This document shows, piece after piece, positions 4,620 through 45,677 of a DNA stretch of 64,000 nucleotides (its first letter is position 1; the number at the start of each line of letters is the position of its first letter). Position numbers and translations under genes: made by a program. Where the stretch lies: positions 142,258 through 206,257 of the IMG/VR virus record IMGVR_UViG_3300045961_000282; one strand, written 5' to 3'. The notes under the pieces are model-generated. The model worked only from the letters and a program-made list of their open reading frames with translations, made no database searches and was not told the origin of the DNA.

Positions 4620-5537
4620 ATGACCAACGACACCCCCCGCAAGGCGCCCAAGATTGCCGCGGCGCGCGAGATTCTCTGGAACGCGGGATACAGCGGCCTG
4701 ACGTGGCGCGACTACGCCGATGCGACCGGCGCCCACCATGGTGCGGCCTCCGGGATGCTGTCCCGGCTGCATCGCGATGGCGATGCCCTGCGGCTGGCCG
4801 AGAAGCGGGGCGCGGATTCGGTCTACGTCGCGCCGGAGTTCCGAATCAACCGGGATATTGTTCCGCCGAAGAAGCGCGCCGCGGAGCCGATCGCTCCCCT
4901 CCCCGTGGCTTCCGAGACTCCCCCGGCCATCGACATGGACGCCGTGTGGCGCGATGCCTACGCCGAGGGCGTGGCCGCCGGTCGCGCGCACGAGCGGACG
5001 ATGGCCGAGAACGCCCGGGCTGAGCACGATGAGGCGATCCGGCTGGCCGGGTTCGCCGAGGGCGTGGCGCAGGGGGTGGCCGACCTCGAGGCCGCCCGAA
5101 GCGCGGCGTTCGCCGACGGGGTGGCCAAGGGCCGAGCCGACGCCCCGCCAACCGAGGATGCCGAGGCGGCCCGCCGGGAAGGCTTCGAGGCCGGTCGCGC
5201 GCAGGCCGAGGCCGAGTGGCAGGCCGGGTATGACGAGGGCGTCAAGGTCGGCGGCGACATCGCAATCGCGGAGATGAAGCAGCGGATGGTCGACGCCGGG
5301 GGCGAGCCGTACCTCAAGGGCCGCGCCGTGGGGCGCAAGGAGGGCGAGGAGGCGCTTCGGCGCCATGCGACCAAGGTGGCTGCCGAGATCGCCCGGGCCA
5401 TCCGGGCCAACGGGTCTCCGGTCAAGACGCACCACAGCACGTGCTGGATGCAGCACCCGGAGTGCGCCGTGAAGGCCGTGGTGCAGGGCATCGGGGTGAC
5501 GCCGGATCGGTTCCGCTCCGAGGTCAATGTCGCCTGA
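4620..5537 (+). CDS. Winged-helix-like protein with GxxxG/AxxxG repeat stalk
   Basis: GLTWRDYADATGAHHGAASGMLSRLH matches the 3878 gene; FliH-like EGxxxG repeats; C-terminal HxxC..HxxC. Confidence 0.75.
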   Translation: MTNDTPRKAPKIAAAREILWNAGYSGLTWRDYADATGAHHGAASGMLSRLHRDGDALRLAEKRGADSVYVAPEFRINRDIVPPKKRAAEPIAPLPVASETPPAIDMDAVWRDAYAEGVAAGRAHERTMAENARAEHDEAIRLAGFAEGVAQGVADLEAARSAAFADGVAKGRADAPPTEDAEAARREGFEAGRAQAEAEWQAGYDEGVKVGGDIAIAEMKQRMVDAGGEPYLKGRAVGRKEGEEALRRHATKVAAEIARAIRANGSPVKTHHSTCWMQHPECAVKAVVQGIGVTPDRFRSEVNVA

Positions 5538-5597
5538 CTTGACGCCGTTCCAGGAGTCGTGCTAAGGTTGTACCAACACCACGACGAAGGGAACATC

Positions 5598-5726
5598 ATG
5601 AAGACCTGCTACAACTGCGACGAGGCCCTCACCGGCCCGGTCAAGACGATCGGCGACTACGTGTGGGACGAGGTGGACGGCGAGGTGCACGAGGAGTTCC
5701 TCGTGCACGTCACCTGCCCCGCCTAG
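5598..5726 (+). CDS. 42-aa Zn-finger-like peptide (MKTCYNC...HVTC)
   Basis: Hand-translated; TTGACG/TAAGGT promoter, RBS, terminator. Confidence 0.65.
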   Translation: MKTCYNCDEALTGPVKTIGDYVWDEVDGEVHEEFLVHVTCPA

Positions 5727-5732
5727 CGGGCA

Positions 5733-5776
5733 CGCAAAAGGCCCCGGAACCCGAAAGGGAACCGGGGCCTTTTGCG
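5733..5776. terminator. Bidirectional intrinsic terminator
   Basis: CGCAAAAGGCCCCGG...CCGGGGCCTTTTGCG between convergent genes. Confidence 0.75.
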
Positions 5777-5781
5777 TTGCC

Positions 5782-6132
5782 TCAGGCCTCGACGTGCTCC
5801 GGGGCCGGGGGGTTGTTCACGATGTAGGCATCCATGACGTGCTTCGGGATGCGGCCCCGATCCGGGACCGGCAGGCCGTTGGCCCGTGCCCACTGCCGGA
5901 CCTCGCTGCCACCCTTCGAGCGGCGCTTGCCCGTGCGTGCGCGACCGGCGATCGGGGTGCTGGTGGTCGGGCGGCCCGCGGCGATGAACGGGGCCAGCGC
6001 GTTGGCCAGCATCTCGCGGTTCGCCGCGCCGAGGTCGATCTCGTAAGACTTCCCGTCAAGGGCGAACGTCACGAGACGAACGCCGTCCTCGCTTCCATCG
6101 AGGTCGTCGATCTTCACCTGTCGCATTGCCAT
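5782..6132 (-). CDS. lsr2: Lsr2-like nucleoid-associated protein
   Basis: IDDLDGS, VTFALDGKSYEIDL, VRQWARANG..VPDRGRIP (RGR AT-hook). Confidence 0.95.
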   Translation of the reverse strand: MAMRQVKIDDLDGSEDGVRLVTFALDGKSYEIDLGAANREMLANALAPFIAAGRPTTSTPIAGRARTGKRRSKGGSEVRQWARANGLPVPDRGRIPKHVMDAYIVNNPPAPEHVEA

Positions 6133-6207
6133 CGTCATTCTCCTGTCGCTTTTTGGTGGGTGGTGGAGAAACAATATCGGACCCCACTGACATCGCGCGA
6201 GATGACA

Positions 6208-6303
6208 TCACCACTTCAGCAGGATTCCGAGGAACAGGAACACCCCCCATCCGAGCAGGAACACGGTCAGCAGGGCCATGTCGTCCTCGTGGTCGCGCTT
6301 CAT
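6208..6303 (-). CDS. 31-aa membrane peptide
   Basis: Hand-translated MKRDHEDDMALLTVFLLGWGVFLFLGILLKW; TAGGGT just upstream. Confidence 0.5.
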   Translation of the reverse strand: MKRDHEDDMALLTVFLLGWGVFLFLGILLKW

Positions 6304-6627
6304 GGACCGGAACCCTACACGCGCTGCTATGCTGGTGCCTTAATTTGATTGGTTGGGCGAACCGGGACAGGCTTGGCTCCGCGTGTAGGAAGCCGGAGCG
6401 CTTTGCAAGGTCAGAGCATTTGACGTTTGACCTAGATTCCCGCCGCTCCCCGGGGAGCCAAGGCCCCGGCGCCTCATTCGAACGAGGTTGCCGGGGCCGC
6501 CTCATGCGCGCGACCGGCCCCGGTGGGGCAAACAAGCATTGGACACCGATCCCGAACCCTCCCTAGAGTGAGTGCTGCCCGCGCTGGAACGCGGGCAGCA
6601 CGAGCCCACCTAGGCAGAGGTGAACTG

Positions 6628-7329
6628 ATGACCAGTATGACCTGTTCGATCGACGGGTGCGACAAGCAAGCGCAGAAGCGCGGGTGGTGTATGGCGCACT
6701 ACTCTCGATGGCACCGTCACGGGGACCCGCTCAAAGGCGGTCCCTCTAGGCAGTCGAGCGATGCTGTGACCTGTTCGGTCGATGGATGCGAGAAGAAGGT
6801 CCAGAGGCGCGGGTGGTGCGCGGCGCACTACACGCGATGGCGTCGCCATGGTGACCCGCTCAAAGGTGGCCCGACGATGCGTCCCAAGGACGTGCTCATC
6901 GAGGAGTGGTTTTGGACGCAGACCAAACCAAACGGCGACTGCCTTGACTGGACGCTGGAGACGAACAATCAAGGCTACGGACACTTCACATGGGACGGCG
7001 AAAACTGGCGCACCCATGTGTTCTCATGGCTCGTCACCAACGGATCTACCAACGGCCTACAGGTTCTCCATCGCTGTGACCGACCGATGTGCGTGAACCC
7101 CGATCACCTGTGGCTTGGCACCATCTCCGACAACATGCGGGACAAGGTGGAAAAGGGGCTTCAAGCACGAGGTTTCGCCCTGCCTCACACCAAACTATCC
7201 GATGATGATGTGCGCGAACTTCGCCTGCTGTGGGCGACCGGAACGCTGTCGCAACAAGAAATAGCCTCCCAGTTCAGGATAACCGCGCCCTACGTATCTT
7301 TGATCGTGAACATGAAGCGGCGCCGGTAA
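6628..7329 (+). CDS. HNH homing endonuclease with duplicated Cys-rich N-terminal repeat
   Basis: VLHRCDRPMCVNPDHL..GT..DN; two copies of C..DGC.K...RGWC..HY.RW.RHGDPLKGGP. Confidence 0.9.
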   Translation: MTSMTCSIDGCDKQAQKRGWCMAHYSRWHRHGDPLKGGPSRQSSDAVTCSVDGCEKKVQRRGWCAAHYTRWRRHGDPLKGGPTMRPKDVLIEEWFWTQTKPNGDCLDWTLETNNQGYGHFTWDGENWRTHVFSWLVTNGSTNGLQVLHRCDRPMCVNPDHLWLGTISDNMRDKVEKGLQARGFALPHTKLSDDDVRELRLLWATGTLSQQEIASQFRITAPYVSLIVNMKRRR

Positions 7330-7330
7330 G

Positions 7331-9175
7331 TTACCGCCTGCCCTTGTACGGAGAACGTTTTCCGAGGTTCGCTGCCCCTAGTGGCGGCAACCGATAGGCA
7401 GACATTGAGCGGGCACGCAGATTAGAATTGACGGCAAATGAAGCGCCCTTGACCTTGGTGGTGAGGGCCAGCGACGCCCAGACCATCGCGTCGAGACGTC
7501 CCGGAGATACCTTGGATTCCGCGGGGACCCATGAGGTGATCTCGGATTCCAACAGCGGGTGGTAGTTCAGCATATGCAGGCGGCCCTGCTCAGCAAGGGC
7601 CGCCACCGGCTCGGCGCGGGTTGCCTTGCCTGCTCGGGCGTGCACGATGTAGACCGGCACGTTGGCATTCACCTGTCCGATGGCCATGCGGACCAGTTCG
7701 CCGCCCTGATTCCCCTCGGCCACCACTGGGCCGCCCCACTTGATCGCCATGTCCACGACCCGCTTGGCCCAGACCGCCGGGCTGCCCAGCACGGTCGCAT
7801 CCTCCACGACGTAGAGTTGGCGGCGGTAGAAGTCCCGCTCGGCGGTTCCCTTCACCACCACGATGCCCGCCTCGTCCTTGGGGCGCTCAGCAACACTGGG
7901 ATCGACCCCGATCACCGTGTGCATCTTGATCCCGCCCGGCAGTTCGGTCACCCGTGCCGCATCGAGGTCGGACTGCATGAACAGCGCGCCCTCGATGTCG
8001 TGCAGCATCTCGCCCATCAGTTCCTGCTGGCCGATCCGGGTCCCTTCGTACAGGCCGAGGATCGTGGCGCGGAAGGACTGCGCAAGGTTGGCGAGGTTGT
8101 CATATGTCGTTCCACGGGTGATGACGATGCCGAACTCAGGATTCTCGGATTCCTCCAGCAGTTGGAACATCGAGGGAACGCGTCGCGGCGTGGTCGTGGC
8201 AACCATACGCGGCATGTCGCCATCAACCGGAAGTCGTAGACCCAGCCGCAAGTTGGCGAACGCCGTCAGACCATCGGCGCCGGAGACCTGCGGGTAGGAA
8301 GCAAACTCGTCGCAGTTGTGAATCAAGACTCCGGCGGCATAGAACTCCGGCGCTCCGTTGATCGTGAGGTCATAGACATTGGCTCGACCCGCCGGGCGCA
8401 CGGAAGCAACAGGAAACAGGGTGGTGCTCGAGTCTGTGCTGAGGCGGACGTGAACCATATCCCCGGCCTCGAGGTCGGCGGCCTGAACCCACGTGTCCCG
8501 CCTCGATTCGCTCGCCACCAACACGAGGTGATCGGGGGTGCAGCGCAATGTCGTCGGCCCGGCCTCGATCTCCACCACCTCGCGGTCGGTTCCCGTGCGC
8601 TGTGCGCGCGCGACCGGCCAGAAGCCGGAACGGGTGAGCACTTTCATCCCCGGCTGGATCTGTTCGATGGGCAGCGGCCCCAGCGAGGTGAGTACCGGCT
8701 CCCCTTCGGCTACGCACCACGCGGTGTCGAACTGGGGACCACGCAACTGGTCCGGCTCGTCGGCGGAGAAGGCCAATGCATACGCGCCGTTCGGCCACGA
8801 CACCCGGCGCTTGGATGGCTCCCAGACGGGTACCTCGCCGGGTCGGGAGGACTCGATGATCCCCGACGGGCCGTTGACCATGACATCGCGGACGTCAGCA
8901 GCGGTGCGGCCCAGCAGCGCGATTCGCCTGCCGTGGCCATCGCGGACCCGTTCATTGATCCACTCAGCGGCGGTTCTCGTTTTCCCCCAACCCCGCCCTG
9001 CCATCGCCAGCCAAAGCACCCAGTCTCCGGACGGAGGGGTCTGGGAGGGCCTCCTCCAGAAGGCCCAATCGTGTATCAGCGACTCGGCATCAACCCCTTC
9101 AAGGGTCGCCTCGCGCTCCTCAGGGGGAAGCAGGGCGATGCGTTGGGCCATCGAGAGTTCGTGGCCGTAGGTCAT
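7331..9175 (-). CDS. Terminase large subunit containing a mini-intein
   Basis: Walker A AGRGWGKT, LRGPQF..AW[intein]CDE Walker B, ATTTP, nuclease GVDPS and C-terminal SPGRLDA. Confidence 0.93.
   Translation of the reverse strand: MTYGHELSMAQRIALLPPEEREATLEGVDAESLIHDWAFWRRPSQTPPSGDWVLWLAMAGRGWGKTRTAAEWINERVRDGHGRRIALLGRTAADVRDVMVNGPSGIIESSRPGEVPVWEPSKRRVSWPNGAYALAFSADEPDQLRGPQFDTAWCVAEGEPVLTSLGPLPIEQIQPGMKVLTRSGFWPVARAQRTGTDREVVEIEAGPTTLRCTPDHLVLVASESRRDTWVQAADLEAGDMVHVRLSTDSSTTLFPVASVRPAGRANVYDLTINGAPEFYAAGVLIHNCDEFASYPQVSGADGLTAFANLRLGLRLPVDGDMPRMVATTTPRRVPSMFQLLEESENPEFGIVITRGTTYDNLANLAQSFRATILGLYEGTRIGQQELMGEMLHDIEGALFMQSDLDAARVTELPGGIKMHTVIGVDPSVAERPKDEAGIVVVKGTAERDFYRRQLYVVEDATVLGSPAVWAKRVVDMAIKWGGPVVAEGNQGGELVRMAIGQVNANVPVYIVHARAGKATRAEPVAALAEQGRLHMLNYHPLLESEITSWVPAESKVSPGRLDAMVWASLALTTKVKGASFAVNSNLRARSMSAYRLPPLGAANLGKRSPYKGRR
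8315..8716 (-). mobile_element. 134-aa mini-intein (Hint domain only) in the terminase Walker B motif
   Basis: Starts CVAEG, block B TPDH, block F VYDLTI, ends IHN followed by Cys+1; removal restores AW-CDE. Confidence 0.93.
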
Positions 9176-9247
9176 GGGGCGAACCATATCCCGCCGTCTC
9201 GGGTGTCAACCGCGGTTCATGCTCGATTCACGCGCGATGAATCCCGC

Positions 9248-10207
9248 TCACCAGTCCCGCACCGGCACCATCGCTCGCCCGATCAAGTAGGTCCCCGCCT
9301 CGGTGTGGATGTCGACGTACTCCTTGGGTTCGATGTCGGCGCTGGCATGGACGTAGTAGGCCGGGCGCACCTCGTTCGGGCGCTTGTTCGGCGCCGCCGC
9401 GCGGGCCACGGCGAGGTCGATGTCCCGCAGGTACATCCGCACCGGGTCGATCAGCACGCGGGTCAACGACTGGGTTGAGTTGTGCACCGCCGAGGACCGC
9501 CAGCCCAGTGAGGTCGCCACCTCGGCCAGTGCGTTGACGATCTCAGGGCGCCGGGAGCGGATCACGACGTGGCGGCGCAGGCCGCGGTTGAACACACCCT
9601 TGCCATCGAGCGCCCCGGCCATCAAGTCACGGCGCACCTCCACAGGCGCCCGCCGGTACGCGAGCGCGACCGGCTCGGAGAAGGCGTCGATGCGATGCAG
9701 CCGCTCCAGCAGCCCATCGACGTAGAGGTAGGCGTGCTTGCCGTGGGCAGTGCGGCGGCGAACCTTCAGGCCGCGGGCCTCGATCATCTCGGCGGCCCGG
9801 TCGGCGAGATTGGCCGGAACCGACACCGCATCCTCGATGCCGGTGGTCCGCCACAAACCATACGTCCACGGATCGAGCGGCGGCCCGGCCTCGAGCCAGT
9901 CCTCGGGGATCTCCCCGATGAGCGCGATCCGCTCGGTCACCACCGGGTCGCGGCGCTCGGCCTCGCCGGGCCACGCCTTCATCGACACCCACGCAGTTCC
10001 CAGCACGAGGTCGTGGTCGGTCGAGCAGCGGATCGGCGGGCCGGAGATCCGCAGTTCGGTGGCTCGGGGCGGGGTCTCGCGGGCTACGCGCGCGACCGGG
10101 GTCGGCTTGCCGGAGGAGTCATAGAGCAGGTCGCCGGGAGCCGCGCGCCACGCCTCGATCCATCCGGTCGGGGAGACCAGCGGGGTCTCGGGATGGATGC
10201 TCGGCAT
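9248..10207 (-). CDS. Free-standing degenerate intein (Hint + LAGLIDADG-like) without exteins
   Basis: SIHPETPLVSPTGW (block A), STDH (B), LDPWTYGLW (C), LMAGALDGKG (E), YVDI...YLIG..MVPVRD (F/G, no terminal HN). Confidence 0.7.
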   Translation of the reverse strand: MPSIHPETPLVSPTGWIEAWRAAPGDLLYDSSGKPTPVARVARETPPRATELRISGPPIRCSTDHDLVLGTAWVSMKAWPGEAERRDPVVTERIALIGEIPEDWLEAGPPLDPWTYGLWRTTGIEDAVSVPANLADRAAEMIEARGLKVRRRTAHGKHAYLYVDGLLERLHRIDAFSEPVALAYRRAPVEVRRDLMAGALDGKGVFNRGLRRHVVIRSRRPEIVNALAEVATSLGWRSSAVHNSTQSLTRVLIDPVRMYLRDIDLAVARAAAPNKRPNEVRPAYYVHASADIEPKEYVDIHTEAGTYLIGRAMVPVRDW

Positions 10208-10486
10208 GAGCGAACCATAGCAATGTCAGCCCAGCACGGCGTGGATGGTGTGCCTGTCTCCAACTGTCATTCGGCTGATCTTCACCACCTCGATGTCGCG
10301 GCGCGCGTTGAGGGACTCAAGGATGTCGCCCAGCGCGATCTCGGCCTGCGCCTCGGTCCCAGTGATGTCCACGTTGATCTGCATGAGGAAGGAGGCTACC
10401 TGCTCGTGTTGATTCTGTCAGCCCCCTTGTGCTATGCTTATTCCTGTGAGCGAGGGAAAGTCCCTCCCCAACGAAAGGAAACCCCC

Positions 10487-10666
10487 ATGCAGGTGAACGT
10501 CCCGGTCCCCTTCCCCGGCACTGCCGAGGAACGCGCCGCCAACCGCGCGACCCACTTCTTCGGCGGGATCGACGGGCGGTGCTTCGACTGCGACAGCCGC
10601 CCCACTCACGTGGCCGCCGACTACCCGTGCTGTGTCGAGCCGCCACGGATGTGGATCACCCGCTGA
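10487..10666 (+). CDS. 59-aa Cys-containing protein
   Basis: Own promoter, hairpin leader, GAAAGGA RBS and terminator. Confidence 0.7.
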   Translation: MQVNVPVPFPGTAEERAANRATHFFGGIDGRCFDCDSRPTHVAADYPCCVEPPRMWITR

Positions 10667-10741
10667 CCCGATAGAGAACCCCCTCGACCAGATACCGGTC
10701 GGGGGGGTTTTCTGTGCTCGCCTCCGTGAGCCGCCGCCAGC

Positions 10742-11659
10742 CTACCGCCAGAACTCGGGCACGGAGTGGTCGTGGTCCGTGCGGCGACACCACGGCGACG
10801 CCTCGCGCCACTTGTGGGCGTAGGACAGCGGCTCGTCGGTGTAGTCGTCGTAGTCCATCCCTTGGTGCTCGCACCACGCTCGATGCGCCGCCCGCGTGCA
10901 CTCGGGGCGGGTCCACTGGCCCAGCCCCCGCAGCAGCGCCCGCACCTCACGTGCGCGCGACCGGTGGGCTGGGGTGAACGTGCACGCCTCGACCACCAGT
11001 TCGTGGTGCATCGACCCCGGGATGGGCCGGGTGTCGGATTCCTCCCAGTTATAGCAGTCCGGCGGCAGGGCGCCCTTGCGCCACATCGTCACCGCCGTCA
11101 TCCGGCTCGGCCCCCACTCGTGGTGCAGCCGCATGAACAGGGCGTCCACCGCGTCGAACGTGTTGCGGTTGACCCACTTGTTCTCCTTGCGCGGGATGGT
11201 CATGCCCGCCCGCTCCTCGAGGATGTCCTCGGTCCAGCCCAGCGCCATCAGTGCGCGGACCTGCCACAGCGTCCACTCCGCCGGGAACCGCTTGGCGTCG
11301 CGAACCATAAGGGCCGGGTTGGACTTCACCTTCTCGACCGTCAGCAGCAGCGTGCGTTCCGTGCTGCGCGCGACGTTGACCCGGCCCGGCGTGAGCACGC
11401 GGTCCAGCGCCCGGCGCTCCATCCCGGAGATGGCCTCGATCTGGGTCCACCGCAGGCCCTGCCCCCGCAGCCACGTCAGGGCCTCGACCGACGTCGCTGC
11501 CGGAACCCGGTCGTAGTCGCTGGGTATCCCCGCCTTCAGGCGCGCCCGACGCGCTCGCCACGTTTCCGCGTGGGCGTCCTTGCAGGGGCGACAGCGGCAG
11601 CCAAGTGAGTAAGAACTCTGTGACGGTGCGCTACATGTAAAGTCTTCATCTGTGCTCAA
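10742..11659 (-). CDS. Zn-finger (GCRC..C) and HTH-like protein
   Basis: YSLGCRCRPC motif, followed by HTH-like GLRWTQIEAISG; start uncertain. Confidence 0.7.
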   Translation of the reverse strand: MSTDEDFTCSAPSQSSYSLGCRCRPCKDAHAETWRARRARLKAGIPSDYDRVPAATSVEALTWLRGQGLRWTQIEAISGMERRALDRVLTPGRVNVARSTERTLLLTVEKVKSNPALMVRDAKRFPAEWTLWQVRALMALGWTEDILEERAGMTIPRKENKWVNRNTFDAVDALFMRLHHEWGPSRMTAVTMWRKGALPPDCYNWEESDTRPIPGSMHHELVVEACTFTPAHRSRAREVRALLRGLGQWTRPECTRAAHRAWCEHQGMDYDDYTDEPLSYAHKWREASPWCRRTDHDHSVPEFWR

Positions 11660-11739
11660 AGTTCCCCAACCTACTTTCTCTGGTCTGAACTTGTGTACGC
11701 TATCGTTGCCGCTGTTCACAGTGAAACAGGAGGTCGGCC

Positions 11740-12555
11740 ATGAGTTATCCATGCGAGGTCGAAGGTTGCCATCGGGGAGATGCATCCCGCCTCAGGGGAA
11801 CGGAGGGCCCCCGCTTGTGCACCACCCACAAGCGGCAAATCAAGACGCGGGGCGAGGTGTGGCTGGTGGAAAAGTGGGTGAAGCCGCCCACCTGCGAAGG
11901 ACCGGAATGCGACCGGGAGCCGAGGTTGCGCATCAAGGAAAGCGGGATCTGGCTGTGCAACTCCCACCGAATGCAACTGGCGAACGGGAAGCCGCTGACT
12001 CCGATCGGATCGACAGTTCATCGCGCCCCTGCGCGACCGGAACGCCTCGCCCGAGAGTCCGACAAGGATCTGGCCCTGCGGCAGATGGTGGTCACCCCCG
12101 AACTGATCGGGAGGTTCTGGAGCAAGGTGGACGTTCGGGGAAGGGATGAGTGCTGGGAATGGAAGGCGTCGTTGACGGCGAGCGGATATGGGCAGTTCAG
12201 CCTTCGCTTCAAAGGCAAGTCCGTTCCTGTACCCGCCCACCGCGTGGCCAGAAGGTTCACCGAGGACGTGTCGGGGAAATGGGTGCTCCACTCCTGCGAC
12301 AACCCCCCGTGCGTGAATCCTCAACACCTGCGGGTGGGGACGTCGAGCGACAACAACTCGGACATGGTCAAACGTGATCGTCATGTCTACGGCTCACGCA
12401 ATCCCGTGGCCAAGGTGTCCGAAGAGCAGGTCAGCGAGATCAAGGCGCGCATCCGTGCCGGAGAACAGTTCACGGTGATCGCCGAGGACTACCCGATCTC
12501 TGCAGCGGGAATCGGGCACATCGCCGCTGGTCGCTCGTGGCGCCACGTCGAGTGA
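11740..12555 (+). CDS. HNH homing endonuclease
   Basis: FWSKV..CWEW, VLHSCDNPPCVNPQHL..GT..DN, C-terminal HTH. Confidence 0.92.
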   Translation: MSYPCEVEGCHRGDASRLRGTEGPRLCTTHKRQIKTRGEVWLVEKWVKPPTCEGPECDREPRLRIKESGIWLCNSHRMQLANGKPLTPIGSTVHRAPARPERLARESDKDLALRQMVVTPELIGRFWSKVDVRGRDECWEWKASLTASGYGQFSLRFKGKSVPVPAHRVARRFTEDVSGKWVLHSCDNPPCVNPQHLRVGTSSDNNSDMVKRDRHVYGSRNPVAKVSEEQVSEIKARIRAGEQFTVIAEDYPISAAGIGHIAAGRSWRHVE

Positions 12556-12586
12556 CTGGGTTCCACACGCGGGCAACGGCGGCCTC

Positions 12587-13012
12587 CTACTGGGCGAAGG
12601 GCATGAAGTAGACCTCGATGAGTTCGTGCTCCAACAGGTGGAGGACCTGATCGAGAACCGAGAGCGTAGTGGACAGGTGAGCCCGGGCGCGCGACACGTC
12701 CATCGGGTTCGGGTTGCTTCCGTCGCGCATCAGCCGACCGATGGCGTCGTCGGCCTTGATCACCCGGATGCGCGCACGCGAGAAGGTGTCGGCGACGAAC
12801 TGGGGATGGTGGCCCGCGGCGATCTCGAGGCTGTCGTCGCCCGCCTCCTCGAGTTTGGTCATCAGGGTCACCACCCCGGCCAGTCGGTACCCGGCGTCGG
12901 CGAGGATGCGCTCGTTGGCCAGCGCGGCGTAGGTGTCCAGATGCAGCAGGGCGCTGGTGATCCCCTCCACCGCCTCGCGGATCAACGGGAGGAGGATGCG
13001 GTTGTCGGTCAC
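12587..13012 (-). CDS. Hypothetical protein
   Basis: Last gene of a coupled minus-strand operon. Confidence 0.7.
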   Translation of the reverse strand: MTDNRILLPLIREAVEGITSALLHLDTYAALANERILADAGYRLAGVVTLMTKLEEAGDDSLEIAAGHHPQFVADTFSRARIRVIKADDAIGRLMRDGSNPNPMDVSRARAHLSTTLSVLDQVLHLLEHELIEVYFMPFAQ

Positions 13013-45366: not shown

Positions 45367-45677
45367 GCTGATCATGATAATGCTGCGCTACCACCACGCC
45401 CAAGCCGGTGAACGGTGATTCGTATCACGGAAGGAAAGCCTCGCCTGCGCGCGCGACCGGCCCCGGCGCGCGCGCTATCTCCCGAACCTTTGGCGAACCA
45501 TACGAGATATGGTTTATGACCCTGACACCGGCGAGGCCCCCCCTGCTTCGCCGGACAGACCCCCACCTCGTCAGCGGAGAGACCCCCCTTCGTAACCATA
45601 GATTTGACATGTGTCAGGGCTTGGGCTTACTCTTGTGTCAACAACGCAACACCACCACCAACCGAAAGGGGAACGAC

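Follow-up and report, generated by a model that had tools for sequence, protein, structure and literature searches.

Domesticated inteins are very rare. The textbook case is the HO endonuclease of budding yeasts together with its WHO relatives (PMC7282813), which are free-standing genes encoding a Hint plus LAGLIDADG intein body with no exteins and no protein splicing. HO and WHO proteins derive from VMA1-type class-1 inteins, are active endonucleases and carry an added C-terminal zinc-finger domain; the WHO genes sit directly beside the essential gene that they relate to. PI-SceI, the VMA1 intein endonuclease, both splices and cleaves DNA. Class-3 inteins with LAGLIDADG domains are found in phage TerL, RecT, Rad52 and DnaB, for example in the TerL of cluster-J mycobacteriophages (PMC5050341). 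These embedded inteins sit in frame in a host protein and keep the Trp-Cys-Thr triad, the terminal His-Asn, a Ser/Thr at +1 and the endonuclease acids. Catalytically dead LAGLIDADG derivatives also exist: WhiA, a cellular protein without a Hint domain and with a C-terminal HTH domain, has lost its metal-binding acids and is kept as a binding module.

Here, we describe a phage gene located just upstream of the large terminase gene (terL) that encodes a whole intein without a host protein. Like HO and WHO it is free-standing and needs no splicing, but it has neither LAGLIDADG acid and no added domain, it descends from phage and bacterial class-3 inteins, it lies upstream of its neighbour rather than downstream, and it shows no clusters of pseudogene copies. 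We found no published description of such a protein and, as far as the literature that we could search shows, it is the first domesticated intein in a virus of bacteria.

RESULTS

A free-standing intein upstream of terL

We analysed a 64,000-nucleotide stretch (the window) of a 206-kb virus genome (IMGVR_UViG_3300045961_000282). The features of the locus are as follows.

6523..7329 (+), HNH homing-endonuclease gene, convergent with terL; absent from the same position in contigs L004, L014 and L018, and hence a separate mobile insertion
7331..9187 (-), terL (Terminase_6N/6C); the likely true start is the ATG at 9175, giving 614 aa, as in homologues
8315..8716 (-), class-1 mini-intein of 134 aa in the TerL Walker B motif (Cys1, TxxH, His-Asn, Cys+1), without endonuclease domain
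9180..9188 (-), second copy of the promoter-like motif TATGGTTCG, TATGGT lying 7 nt before the terL ATG at 9175
9248..10207 (-), free-standing intein-derived gene, 319 aa plus stop
9254..9397 (-), its C-terminal Hint lobe (residues 271-318; blocks F and G)
9398..9892 (-), its LAGLIDADG domain (residues 106-270)
9893..9997 (-), its variable linker (residues 71-105), with pLDDT below 50 at residues 72-87 and indels between family members
9998..10201 (-), its N-terminal Hint lobe (residues 3-70; blocks A and B), the most constrained part (86% identity and dN/dS of 0.14 against L004)
10211..10219 (-), TATGGTTCG promoter-like motif, TATGGT lying 6 nt before the ATG at 10207
10742..11785 (-), 347-aa upstream neighbour (phrog_1590; HTH-like by language-model features), conserved upstream of the intein-like gene in L004 and L010 and replaced by another protein in the P0004-type subgroup

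The preliminary description of this locus, an intein gene without exteins next to a terminase carrying an endonuclease-free mini-intein, was confirmed. The gene lies 60 nt upstream of terL. A profile of its family hits embedded inteins at E-values down to 6.5e-38 over profile positions 4-310 of 312, and tblastn gave 24% identity over 98% of the ORF to the TerL inteins of cluster-J mycobacteriophages. The length and the block order A-B-C-E-F-G are those of the embedded inteins, and the DnaB mini-inteins 6rix and 6bs8 match in blocks A and F/G. Only Met-Pro precede intein position 1 (Ser3) and only Trp319 follows the last intein residue; there are stops on both sides, and the same limits hold in nearly all family members. 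An independent Logan contig, from what is probably the source sample, covers 7000-10700 with no differences.

Absence of a Hint/LAGLIDADG fold had been put forward in advance as an outcome that would overturn this assignment. We predicted the structure. AlphaFold2 with a 65-sequence alignment gave a pLDDT of 88.7 and a pTM of 0.88, whereas an alignment of only 4 sequences gave an unusable model (pLDDT 48). The larger alignment was dominated by true inteins; however, the single-sequence model from the ESM Atlas (pTM 0.78) finds the same fold independently. The top PDB hits in Foldseek are PI-SceI (E 2e-15, TM 0.71-0.73), followed by the Tli and Pho VMA inteins, PI-PfuI and I-DmoI. PI-SceI shares the Hint domain with an inserted LAGLIDADG domain, although the sequence identity is 13-15% and PI-SceI is about 130 residues larger. 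The model has LAGLIDADG helices at 113-122 and 189-203 with the strands expected of an alpha-beta-beta-alpha-beta-beta-alpha fold.

Splicing and endonuclease residues are replaced

The preliminary description had taken Ser3 as a replacement for Cys1. This needs correction, as the relatives are class-3 inteins, which have no nucleophile at position 1 (Ala or Gly in 38 of 59). The real losses are Trp-B12 to Leu67, Cys-F4 to Tyr297 and Thr-G5 to Val316 (triad as defined in PMC5050341), so the lost nucleophile is Cys-F4. The terminal His-Asn, reported as lacking, is Arg317-Asp318. The LAGLIDADG acids, reported as degenerate, are both replaced: helix 1 ends in Thr122-Gly123 instead of Asp-Gly, and helix 2 ends in Asp201-Gly-Lys203-Gly instead of Asp-x-Asp-Gly.

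Among 59 embedded relatives, Trp-B12 is kept in 58, Cys-F4 in 59, Thr-G5 in 58, the His in 56, the Asn in 58, the LAGLIDADG-1 Asp in 45 (Asn in the other 14) and the LAGLIDADG-2 Asp in 58. All 18 free-standing members have none of these. Their triad positions hold L/V/A/G/C, F/Y and V/A/S, and their LAGLIDADG positions T/Q/S/A/L and K/R. The +1 residue varies among W, C, Y, H, F, S and A, followed by the stop in all but one member. They share new conserved residues instead, namely Ser1 (Ser3 here), Ser-B7, Phe/Tyr-F4, the terminal Arg-Asp, Arg/Lys in LAGLIDADG-2 and the family-specific invariant Asp126. In the N-terminal Hint lobe, Ser3, Ser62 and Asp64-His65-Asp66 are conserved. Cleavage of DNA was not assayed, and Asp126 leaves a small chance of a non-canonical active site. 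The beta-saddle strands keep their basic residues (6.3 Lys+Arg against 5.9 in active inteins), but the protein is near-neutral or acidic overall (mean net charge of -2 against +6 for active relatives).

The gene is conserved and co-diverges with terL

We found 17 further members (309-314 aa) in metagenomes, making a family of 18 that are 32-64% identical to the protein of the window. Contigs carrying the gene are denoted L004 to L019 below. The family forms one clade (100/100 support) on a stem of 1.69 changes per site. The tree roots between free-standing and embedded inteins, and neither a sister intein nor an ancestral insertion site was identified from it. There is no other class-3 intein in the genome. 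A megablast search of 7000-10700 against cultured phages, a pattern scan of IMG/VR with the protein and a tblastn search of P0004 against phages gave no match.

Neutral decay in homologues and dN/dS had both been named beforehand as tests of domestication. The dN/dS values are 0.42-0.63, with bootstrap intervals below 1 in 9 of 10 pairs, which means only moderate constraint. All 18 reading frames are open, with the same start (Met-x-Ser) and almost the same end (Arg-Asp plus one residue; one member differs). All indels are in frame and 29 columns are invariant, whereas fewer than 1% of simulated neutral copies stay open at the observed divergence.

Linkage to terL in relatives with and without the mini-intein, likewise proposed earlier as a check, was examined in 12 contigs. 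The gene lies directly upstream of and co-oriented with terL in 11 of them (the window, L004, L006, L010, L012, L014, L015, L017, L018 and L019, and apparently L005). In L010 its stop overlaps the start of a terL that has no mini-intein. The exception is L016, where the gene is followed by lsr2 with no terL in 11.5 kb. The identity between copies tracks TerL identity (r = 0.89), although the protein evolves two to three times faster than TerL.

The mini-intein, promoter-like motifs and small terminase

The terL mini-intein spans Cys158 to Asn291 of the ORF with Cys at +1, in ...QFDTAW|...|CDEFAS; an intein-less relative reads QFDTGWADEFSS at the same place. We considered whether the free-standing gene is the lost endonuclease half or a copy of this mini-intein. 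This was rejected, as the two belong to different intein classes and have no specific similarity (E 0.008-0.017).

The motif TATGGTTCG precedes both genes, but it is not a duplication of the terL start: it occurs 19 times in the window against 0.22 expected, and is a general promoter-like element of this phage. The TATGGT 6 nt before the ATG at 10207 suggests a leaderless transcript, which is an inference. The sequencing data comprised only the source DNA metagenome, kept as contigs, with no RNA or read-end evidence for expression or genome termini; a consensus promoter and terminator scan was uninformative. Read-through or fusion with terL or with the in-frame upstream 52-aa ORF was also rejected. 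The frames coincide in the window and L004 but not in L006 or L010, and the shared 'CYGS' upstream is just the promoter motif read as protein. A maturase role for a nearby group I intron was rejected as well, as Rfam finds nothing in 5000-13000.

Five Pfam small-terminase families give no hit over their cut-off anywhere in the 206-kb genome, and no recognisable small-terminase family was found among the neighbours. The intein-like protein itself has no similarity to a small-terminase family in Pfam, PHROGs or NCBIfam, and its predicted fold is that of an intein. Small terminases are often unrecognisable, so this absence is weak evidence, and in part of the clade the 347-aa HTH-like neighbour is an alternative candidate.

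DISCUSSION

The earlier interpretation was partly borne out: domestication is supported, a trans-acting homing helper is not, and a packaging partner is plausible but untested. Against the helper, both canonical LAGLIDADG acids are gone in all members, the protein and the mini-intein are of different classes, and the gene is present next to a terL without the mini-intein.

We conclude that the gene is an exapted class-3 intein. The data show that an intein of the kind that populates phage terminase, RecT, Rad52 and helicase genes became a free-standing gene once, in the ancestor of this phage clade, and lost its exteins, its splicing triad, its terminal His-Asn and both endonuclease acids; that it came from terL itself is only inferred. 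They also show that it then went through a burst of change and has since been kept by purifying selection as a separate protein inherited together with terL. The mechanism is inferred throughout. We propose, with moderate confidence, that the intact Hint plus LAGLIDADG scaffold now works as a non-cleaving, sequence-reading DNA-binding module, made together with TerL from its own promoter in this genome or by translational coupling in relatives. It would act on phage DNA in the packaging step, most likely by marking or recognising a site for the terminase, as a small-terminase-like specificity factor does; control of terL is the alternative. Position is the only evidence for this role; DNA binding, interaction with TerL, stimulation of TerL and genome termini were not measured. 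The location immediately upstream of terL, the likely co-expression and the fast evolution resemble a small terminase. On the other hand, the protein is monomer-sized, nothing suggests ring oligomers as in the ring-forming small terminases, and L016 lacks the adjacency. A bolder version, that this protein has taken over the DNA-recognition role of the small terminase in a clade of large actinophage-like viruses, is not excluded but appears unlikely; a selfish element that once parasitised terL would then have been recruited as a subunit or specificity factor of the packaging machine itself.

Among the other explanations, a WhiA-like transcription regulator, binding promoter or operator DNA to time late genes including terL, is possible but unlikely; the resemblance to WhiA was not tested here. 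The intact fold, the lost catalytic residues, the retained basic saddle and the repeated TATGGTTCG motif that such a factor could read are consistent with it, and the L016 context fits a role not tied to packaging. However, the protein has no HTH or other added DNA-binding domain, there is no binding-site evidence, and the near-constant adjacency to terL is not explained.

A still selfish free-standing homing endonuclease, which like the WHO elements or phage intronless-homing genes would sit next to the essential gene that it cuts in phages lacking it and use a non-canonical active site, is slightly less likely. Adjacency to a conserved essential gene is typical of free-standing homing genes, WHO elements being located beside their target FBA1 (PMC7282813). 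Moreover, terL of this clade is an intein hotspot carrying 0, 1 or 2 inteins, class-3 relatives are inserted at several sites of homologous TerLs, the protein evolves fast, and the derived Asp126 lies four residues after the lost LAGLIDADG-1 acid. Against this, one of the two replaced acids is Lys or Arg, the gene is present in every contig of the clade with no pseudogenes, it co-diverges with terL rather than showing patchy, recently transferred copies, and no duplicated terL fragments flank it.

It is doubtful that the protein is a homing-site shield, a dead endonuclease still binding its ancestral target inside terL and protecting it from the active intein endonucleases of co-infecting phages. 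Close TerL homologues carry class-3 inteins at ...DVRDVMxxGE|SG..., at Walker A and at ...AF|SADEPDQ, the first and third sites being empty in this terL, and the varying intein load shows ongoing invasion pressure. However, the ancestral insertion site is not resolved by the tree, L012 has the gene and still acquired a full intein at AF|SADE, and we found no precedent. A functionless, neutrally decaying remnant of an intein or of a larger gene is very unlikely, since the loss of all catalytic residues, the weak Pfam matches and the fast evolution are outweighed by the open frames, in-frame indels, invariant columns and dN/dS below 1.

This is a second, independent domestication of an intein, which occurred in viruses of bacteria and from a different intein class, and which discarded both the splicing and the cleavage chemistry while keeping the scaffold, whereas HO and WHO are still nucleases. 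It shows that phage inteins can be raw material for new proteins, not only parasites. The near-constant place beside terL makes the protein a concrete candidate for an unrecognised packaging or regulatory factor, and a naturally non-cleaving, long-site DNA reader could also be useful as a binding module. Most members escape Pfam (only 5 of 18 give a weak Hom_end hit), and are therefore annotated as hypothetical proteins. The ESM Atlas lists further clusters of roughly 310-350-aa viral proteins that look alike, so the phenomenon may be wider.

Genomic setting of the locus

The 206-kb virus record, of which the window forms the last 64 kb, is about 99% complete, and the only sequencing run holding it is a freshwater-sediment metagenome. 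An independent assembly of what is probably the same sample covers 7000-10700 without a single difference. The TerL of this virus is 40–52% identical to those of Actinomycetia phage DSL-LC01 and of large Microbacterium, Gordonia and Arthrobacter phages. The neighbourhood carries Lsr2-like genes, and a relative also carries a WhiB-like gene. An actinobacterial host is therefore likely. The features of the locus are as follows.

5782-6174, minus strand: gene for an Lsr2-like nucleoid-associated protein, downstream of terL
6523-7329, plus strand: HNH / His-Me homing-endonuclease gene
7331-9187, minus strand: terL
9248-10207, minus strand: intein-derived ORF, 319 aa, followed after 60 nt by terL
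10208-10741: spacer between the intein-derived gene and the 347-aa gene
10226-10384, minus strand: 52-aa ORF within this spacer
10742-11785, minus strand: 347-aa neighbour (phrog_1590, function unknown)
11740-12555, plus strand: HNH / His-Me homing-endonuclease gene

terL matches Terminase_6N and Terminase_6C, and contains Hint and intein-splicing matches. The insert runs from Cys158 to Asn291 (134 aa) and is followed by Cys. It has TxxH and His-Asn but no endonuclease domain, and its nearest solved relatives are RecA and other class-1 mini-inteins. It sits in ...QFDTAW|intein|CDEFAS, which is the Walker B motif, and a relative without the insert reads QFDTGWADEFSS.

The two homing-endonuclease genes bracket the locus on the opposite strand, and the one convergent with terL is absent from L004, L014 and L018 (contigs carrying relatives of the intein-derived gene). 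The terL region is therefore a landing zone for several kinds of mobile nuclease genes. The Lsr2-like gene lies in the same synteny in L004, L014 and a further such contig, L016. The spacer at 10208-10741 is about 360 nt longer than in L004. Its 52-aa ORF is in frame with the intein-derived gene, is separated from it by one stop and six codons and has no family hits; the spacer also holds a Cys-rich small ORF on the plus strand ending at 10666.

The ORF upstream of terL corresponds to a whole intein

We first asked whether the ORF at 9248-10207 is related to inteins over its whole length. tblastn aligned 98% of it to the inteins inside TerL of cluster-J mycobacteriophages, at 24% identity. A profile of the family found thousands of embedded inteins, the best at E 6.5e-38 over profile positions 4-310 of 312. 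By sequence, the PDB matches are DnaB mini-inteins in blocks A and F/G and PI-SceI in block E. Only Met-Pro precede intein position 1, and only Trp follows the last intein residue.

Absence of a Hint/LAGLIDADG fold would have counted against the preliminary interpretation, and we modeled the protein. AlphaFold2 with a 65-sequence alignment gave pLDDT 88.7 and pTM 0.88, and Foldseek placed PI-SceI first (E 2e-15, TM 0.71-0.73), followed by the Tli and Pho VMA inteins, PI-PfuI and I-DmoI. Although that alignment consisted mostly of true inteins, the single-sequence model in the ESM Atlas (pTM 0.78) shows the same fold. The preliminary observation of an extein-less intein gene directly upstream of terL is real and well supported.

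Class-3 origin and loss of the catalytic residues

The 59 nearest embedded inteins are class 3 as defined in PMC5050341, that is, they have no nucleophile at position 1 and have a Trp-B12, Cys-F4, Thr-G5 triad. We compared the residues at the catalytic positions in these inteins, in this ORF and in the rest of the family.

Table. Residues at former catalytic positions (position; 59 embedded relatives; this ORF; rest of the family)
B12; Trp in 58; Leu67; L/V/A/G/C
F4; Cys in 59; Tyr297; F/Y
G5; Thr in 58; Val316; V/A/S
G6; His in 56; Arg317; R (W in one)
G7; Asn in 58; Asp318; D
LAGLIDADG-1 acid; Asp in 45 (Asn in 14); Thr122; T/Q/S/A/L
LAGLIDADG-2 acid; Asp in 58; Lys203; K/R

The preliminary description had read the ORF as having Ser in place of Cys1. 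This needs correcting, because this intein class never had Cys1. Ser3 is instead a derived residue, found in every member whose N-terminus is known. Other derived, conserved residues are Ser62, Phe/Tyr297, Arg/Lys203 and Asp126.

A conserved family under selection

Next, we searched for relatives by word-indexed and exhaustive searches and found 17 further members of 309–314 aa, 32–64% identical, all from metagenomes. All start with Met-x-Ser. All but one end with Arg-Asp plus one variable residue and then the stop; the exception ends with Trp-Asp followed by four residues. They form a single clade with 100/100 support on a stem of 1.69 changes per site, compared to a median terminal branch of 0.56.

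The dN/dS ratio had been named in advance as a test of domestication. Pairwise dN/dS was found to be 0.42-0.63, with bootstrap intervals below 1 in 9 of 10 pairs, compared to 0.13 for the TerL exteins and 0.29 for the mini-intein. In simulations, neutral substitution at the observed divergence kept the frame open in fewer than 1% of trials, whereas all copies are open and their indels are in frame. The N-terminal Hint lobe is the most constrained part. Most members escape Pfam, and NCBIfam and PHROGs find nothing, which explains why the family is unannotated.

The ESM Atlas lists many clusters of viral 'hypothetical proteins' of roughly 310–350 aa, without Pfam families, that resemble the protein encoded at 9251-10207 (minus strand), with feature scores of 0.94-0.97. 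One has TM 0.78/0.76 over the whole length of both, and one of the listed clusters is mainly from giant viruses (Nucleocytoviricota). The family may therefore be wider, and extein-less degenerate inteins may be more widespread than the 18 sequences recovered here, but the sequences of these clusters were not part of our analysis.

Linkage to terL

We then examined what follows the gene in each contig, since linkage to terL in relatives with and without the mini-intein had likewise been proposed as a check.

Table. Context of the gene and intein state of terL (contig; what follows the gene; terL intein state)
Window, L004, L014, L015, L018, L019; terL; mini-intein in Walker B
L010; terL, the gene's stop overlapping the terL start; no mini-intein
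L012; terL; a further full-length intein at ...ALAF/SADEPDQ..., plus the start of the Walker B one
L006, L017; terL; contig ends too early to tell
L005; contig ends inside the terL promoter-like motif; unknown
L016; lsr2, no terL in 11.5 kb; exception

The extra intein of L012 (metagenome contig Ga0114942_1013810, 1027-2268) lies between ...ALAF and SADEPDQ..., starts with Cys and ends ...TGN before Ser; the contig ends at the Cys-Val that begins the Walker B mini-intein. Across the clade, terL carries 0 (L010), 1 or 2 inteins. In L016 (Logan contig from SRR30863582, 8547-9879), the intein-derived gene is followed 77 nt later by lsr2, and the roughly 2.8 kb that hold terL and two small genes in L014 are missing. 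terL may have moved, or this may be a deletion variant or a chimeric assembly.

Phages whose TerL is only 41–53% identical lack the gene. Identity between copies of the gene tracks identity between the TerL N-termini (r = 0.89 over 28 non-independent pairs), and the gene diverges two to three times faster than TerL. No other class-3 intein exists in this genome. The genome also has only one terL, while a distant relative, Microbacterium phage Big4 (ON637770.1:24020-28860), has an intein-containing terminase gene (766 aa) plus two further adjacent genes annotated as terminase large subunit, which suggests a second, split TerL paralogue.

Interpretation of the intein-derived gene

The preliminary interpretation is partly supported: domestication is supported by these data, the homing-helper idea is not, and the packaging role is a reasonable but untested hypothesis. 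What the analysis demonstrates is an intact intein scaffold, the absence of catalytic residues, selection, a single origin and inheritance together with terL. That the protein is a non-cleaving DNA-binding module acting with the packaging gene is our inference, and we consider it the most likely function.

Consistent with this, the basic residues of the LAGLIDADG beta-saddle are retained, and the gene occupies the place usually held by the small terminase. Five Pfam small-terminase models found nothing over their cut-off in the genome. On the other hand, there is no functional data, the overall charge has dropped to about -2, and L016 breaks the adjacency. In part of the clade, the HTH-like 347-aa neighbour could be the small terminase. 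This protein has a Cys-x-Cys-x-x-Cys motif and by language-model features resembles HTH_23/HTH_3 proteins of actinobacteria and their phages, and one look-alike cluster partly carries Terminase_5. It is a possible DNA-binding or small-terminase candidate in the window, L004 and L010, whereas in one subgroup of the family (the P0004-type subgroup) an unrelated 344–349-aa protein takes its place.

Alternatively, the protein could be a late-gene regulator, a shield for terL homing sites, or a still-selfish WHO-like element with an unusual active site, for which Asp126 is a loose end. A role as a trans-acting homing helper for the mini-intein, suggested in the preliminary description, is not supported, as the endonuclease acids are gone, the two elements belong to different intein classes with only trivial similarity, and the gene persists where the mini-intein is absent. 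A read-through fusion with terL or with the upstream 52-aa ORF is not supported either, because the frames differ among relatives. An RNA maturase has no intron to act on; Rfam finds nothing in 5000-13000. A neutral remnant, which would have refuted the preliminary interpretation, is excluded by the open frames and by selection.

The closest precedents in kind are yeast HO and the WHO elements, which are free-standing intein-like genes, the latter sitting beside their target gene (PMC7282813). However, these are active nucleases with an added zinc finger and descend from a different intein class. A 2025 survey of actinobacteriophage inteins (10.1101/2025.01.02.630785) and the 2016 mycobacteriophage survey (PMC5050341) do not describe extein-less inteins, and full-text searches for such terms found nothing relevant.

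Expression signals

TATGGTTCG precedes both the intein-derived gene and terL. It occurs 19 times in the window, on both strands, against 0.22 expected (e.g. 3866+, 9188-, 10219-, 15572+ and 60813-). The sites are mostly intergenic and are often followed by ATG 4–7 nt after the TATGGT hexamer. We infer that it is a phage-specific -10 element driving leaderless transcripts. It places the terL start at 9175. In the P0004-type subgroup, the gene instead overlaps the stop of its upstream neighbour and lies 8–19 nt from terL, which points to co-translation. The motif also occurs in the relative L004 and at the end of L005. Two sites in the window are head-to-head palindromes (pairs at 45502/45508 and 63286/63292), possibly divergent promoters.
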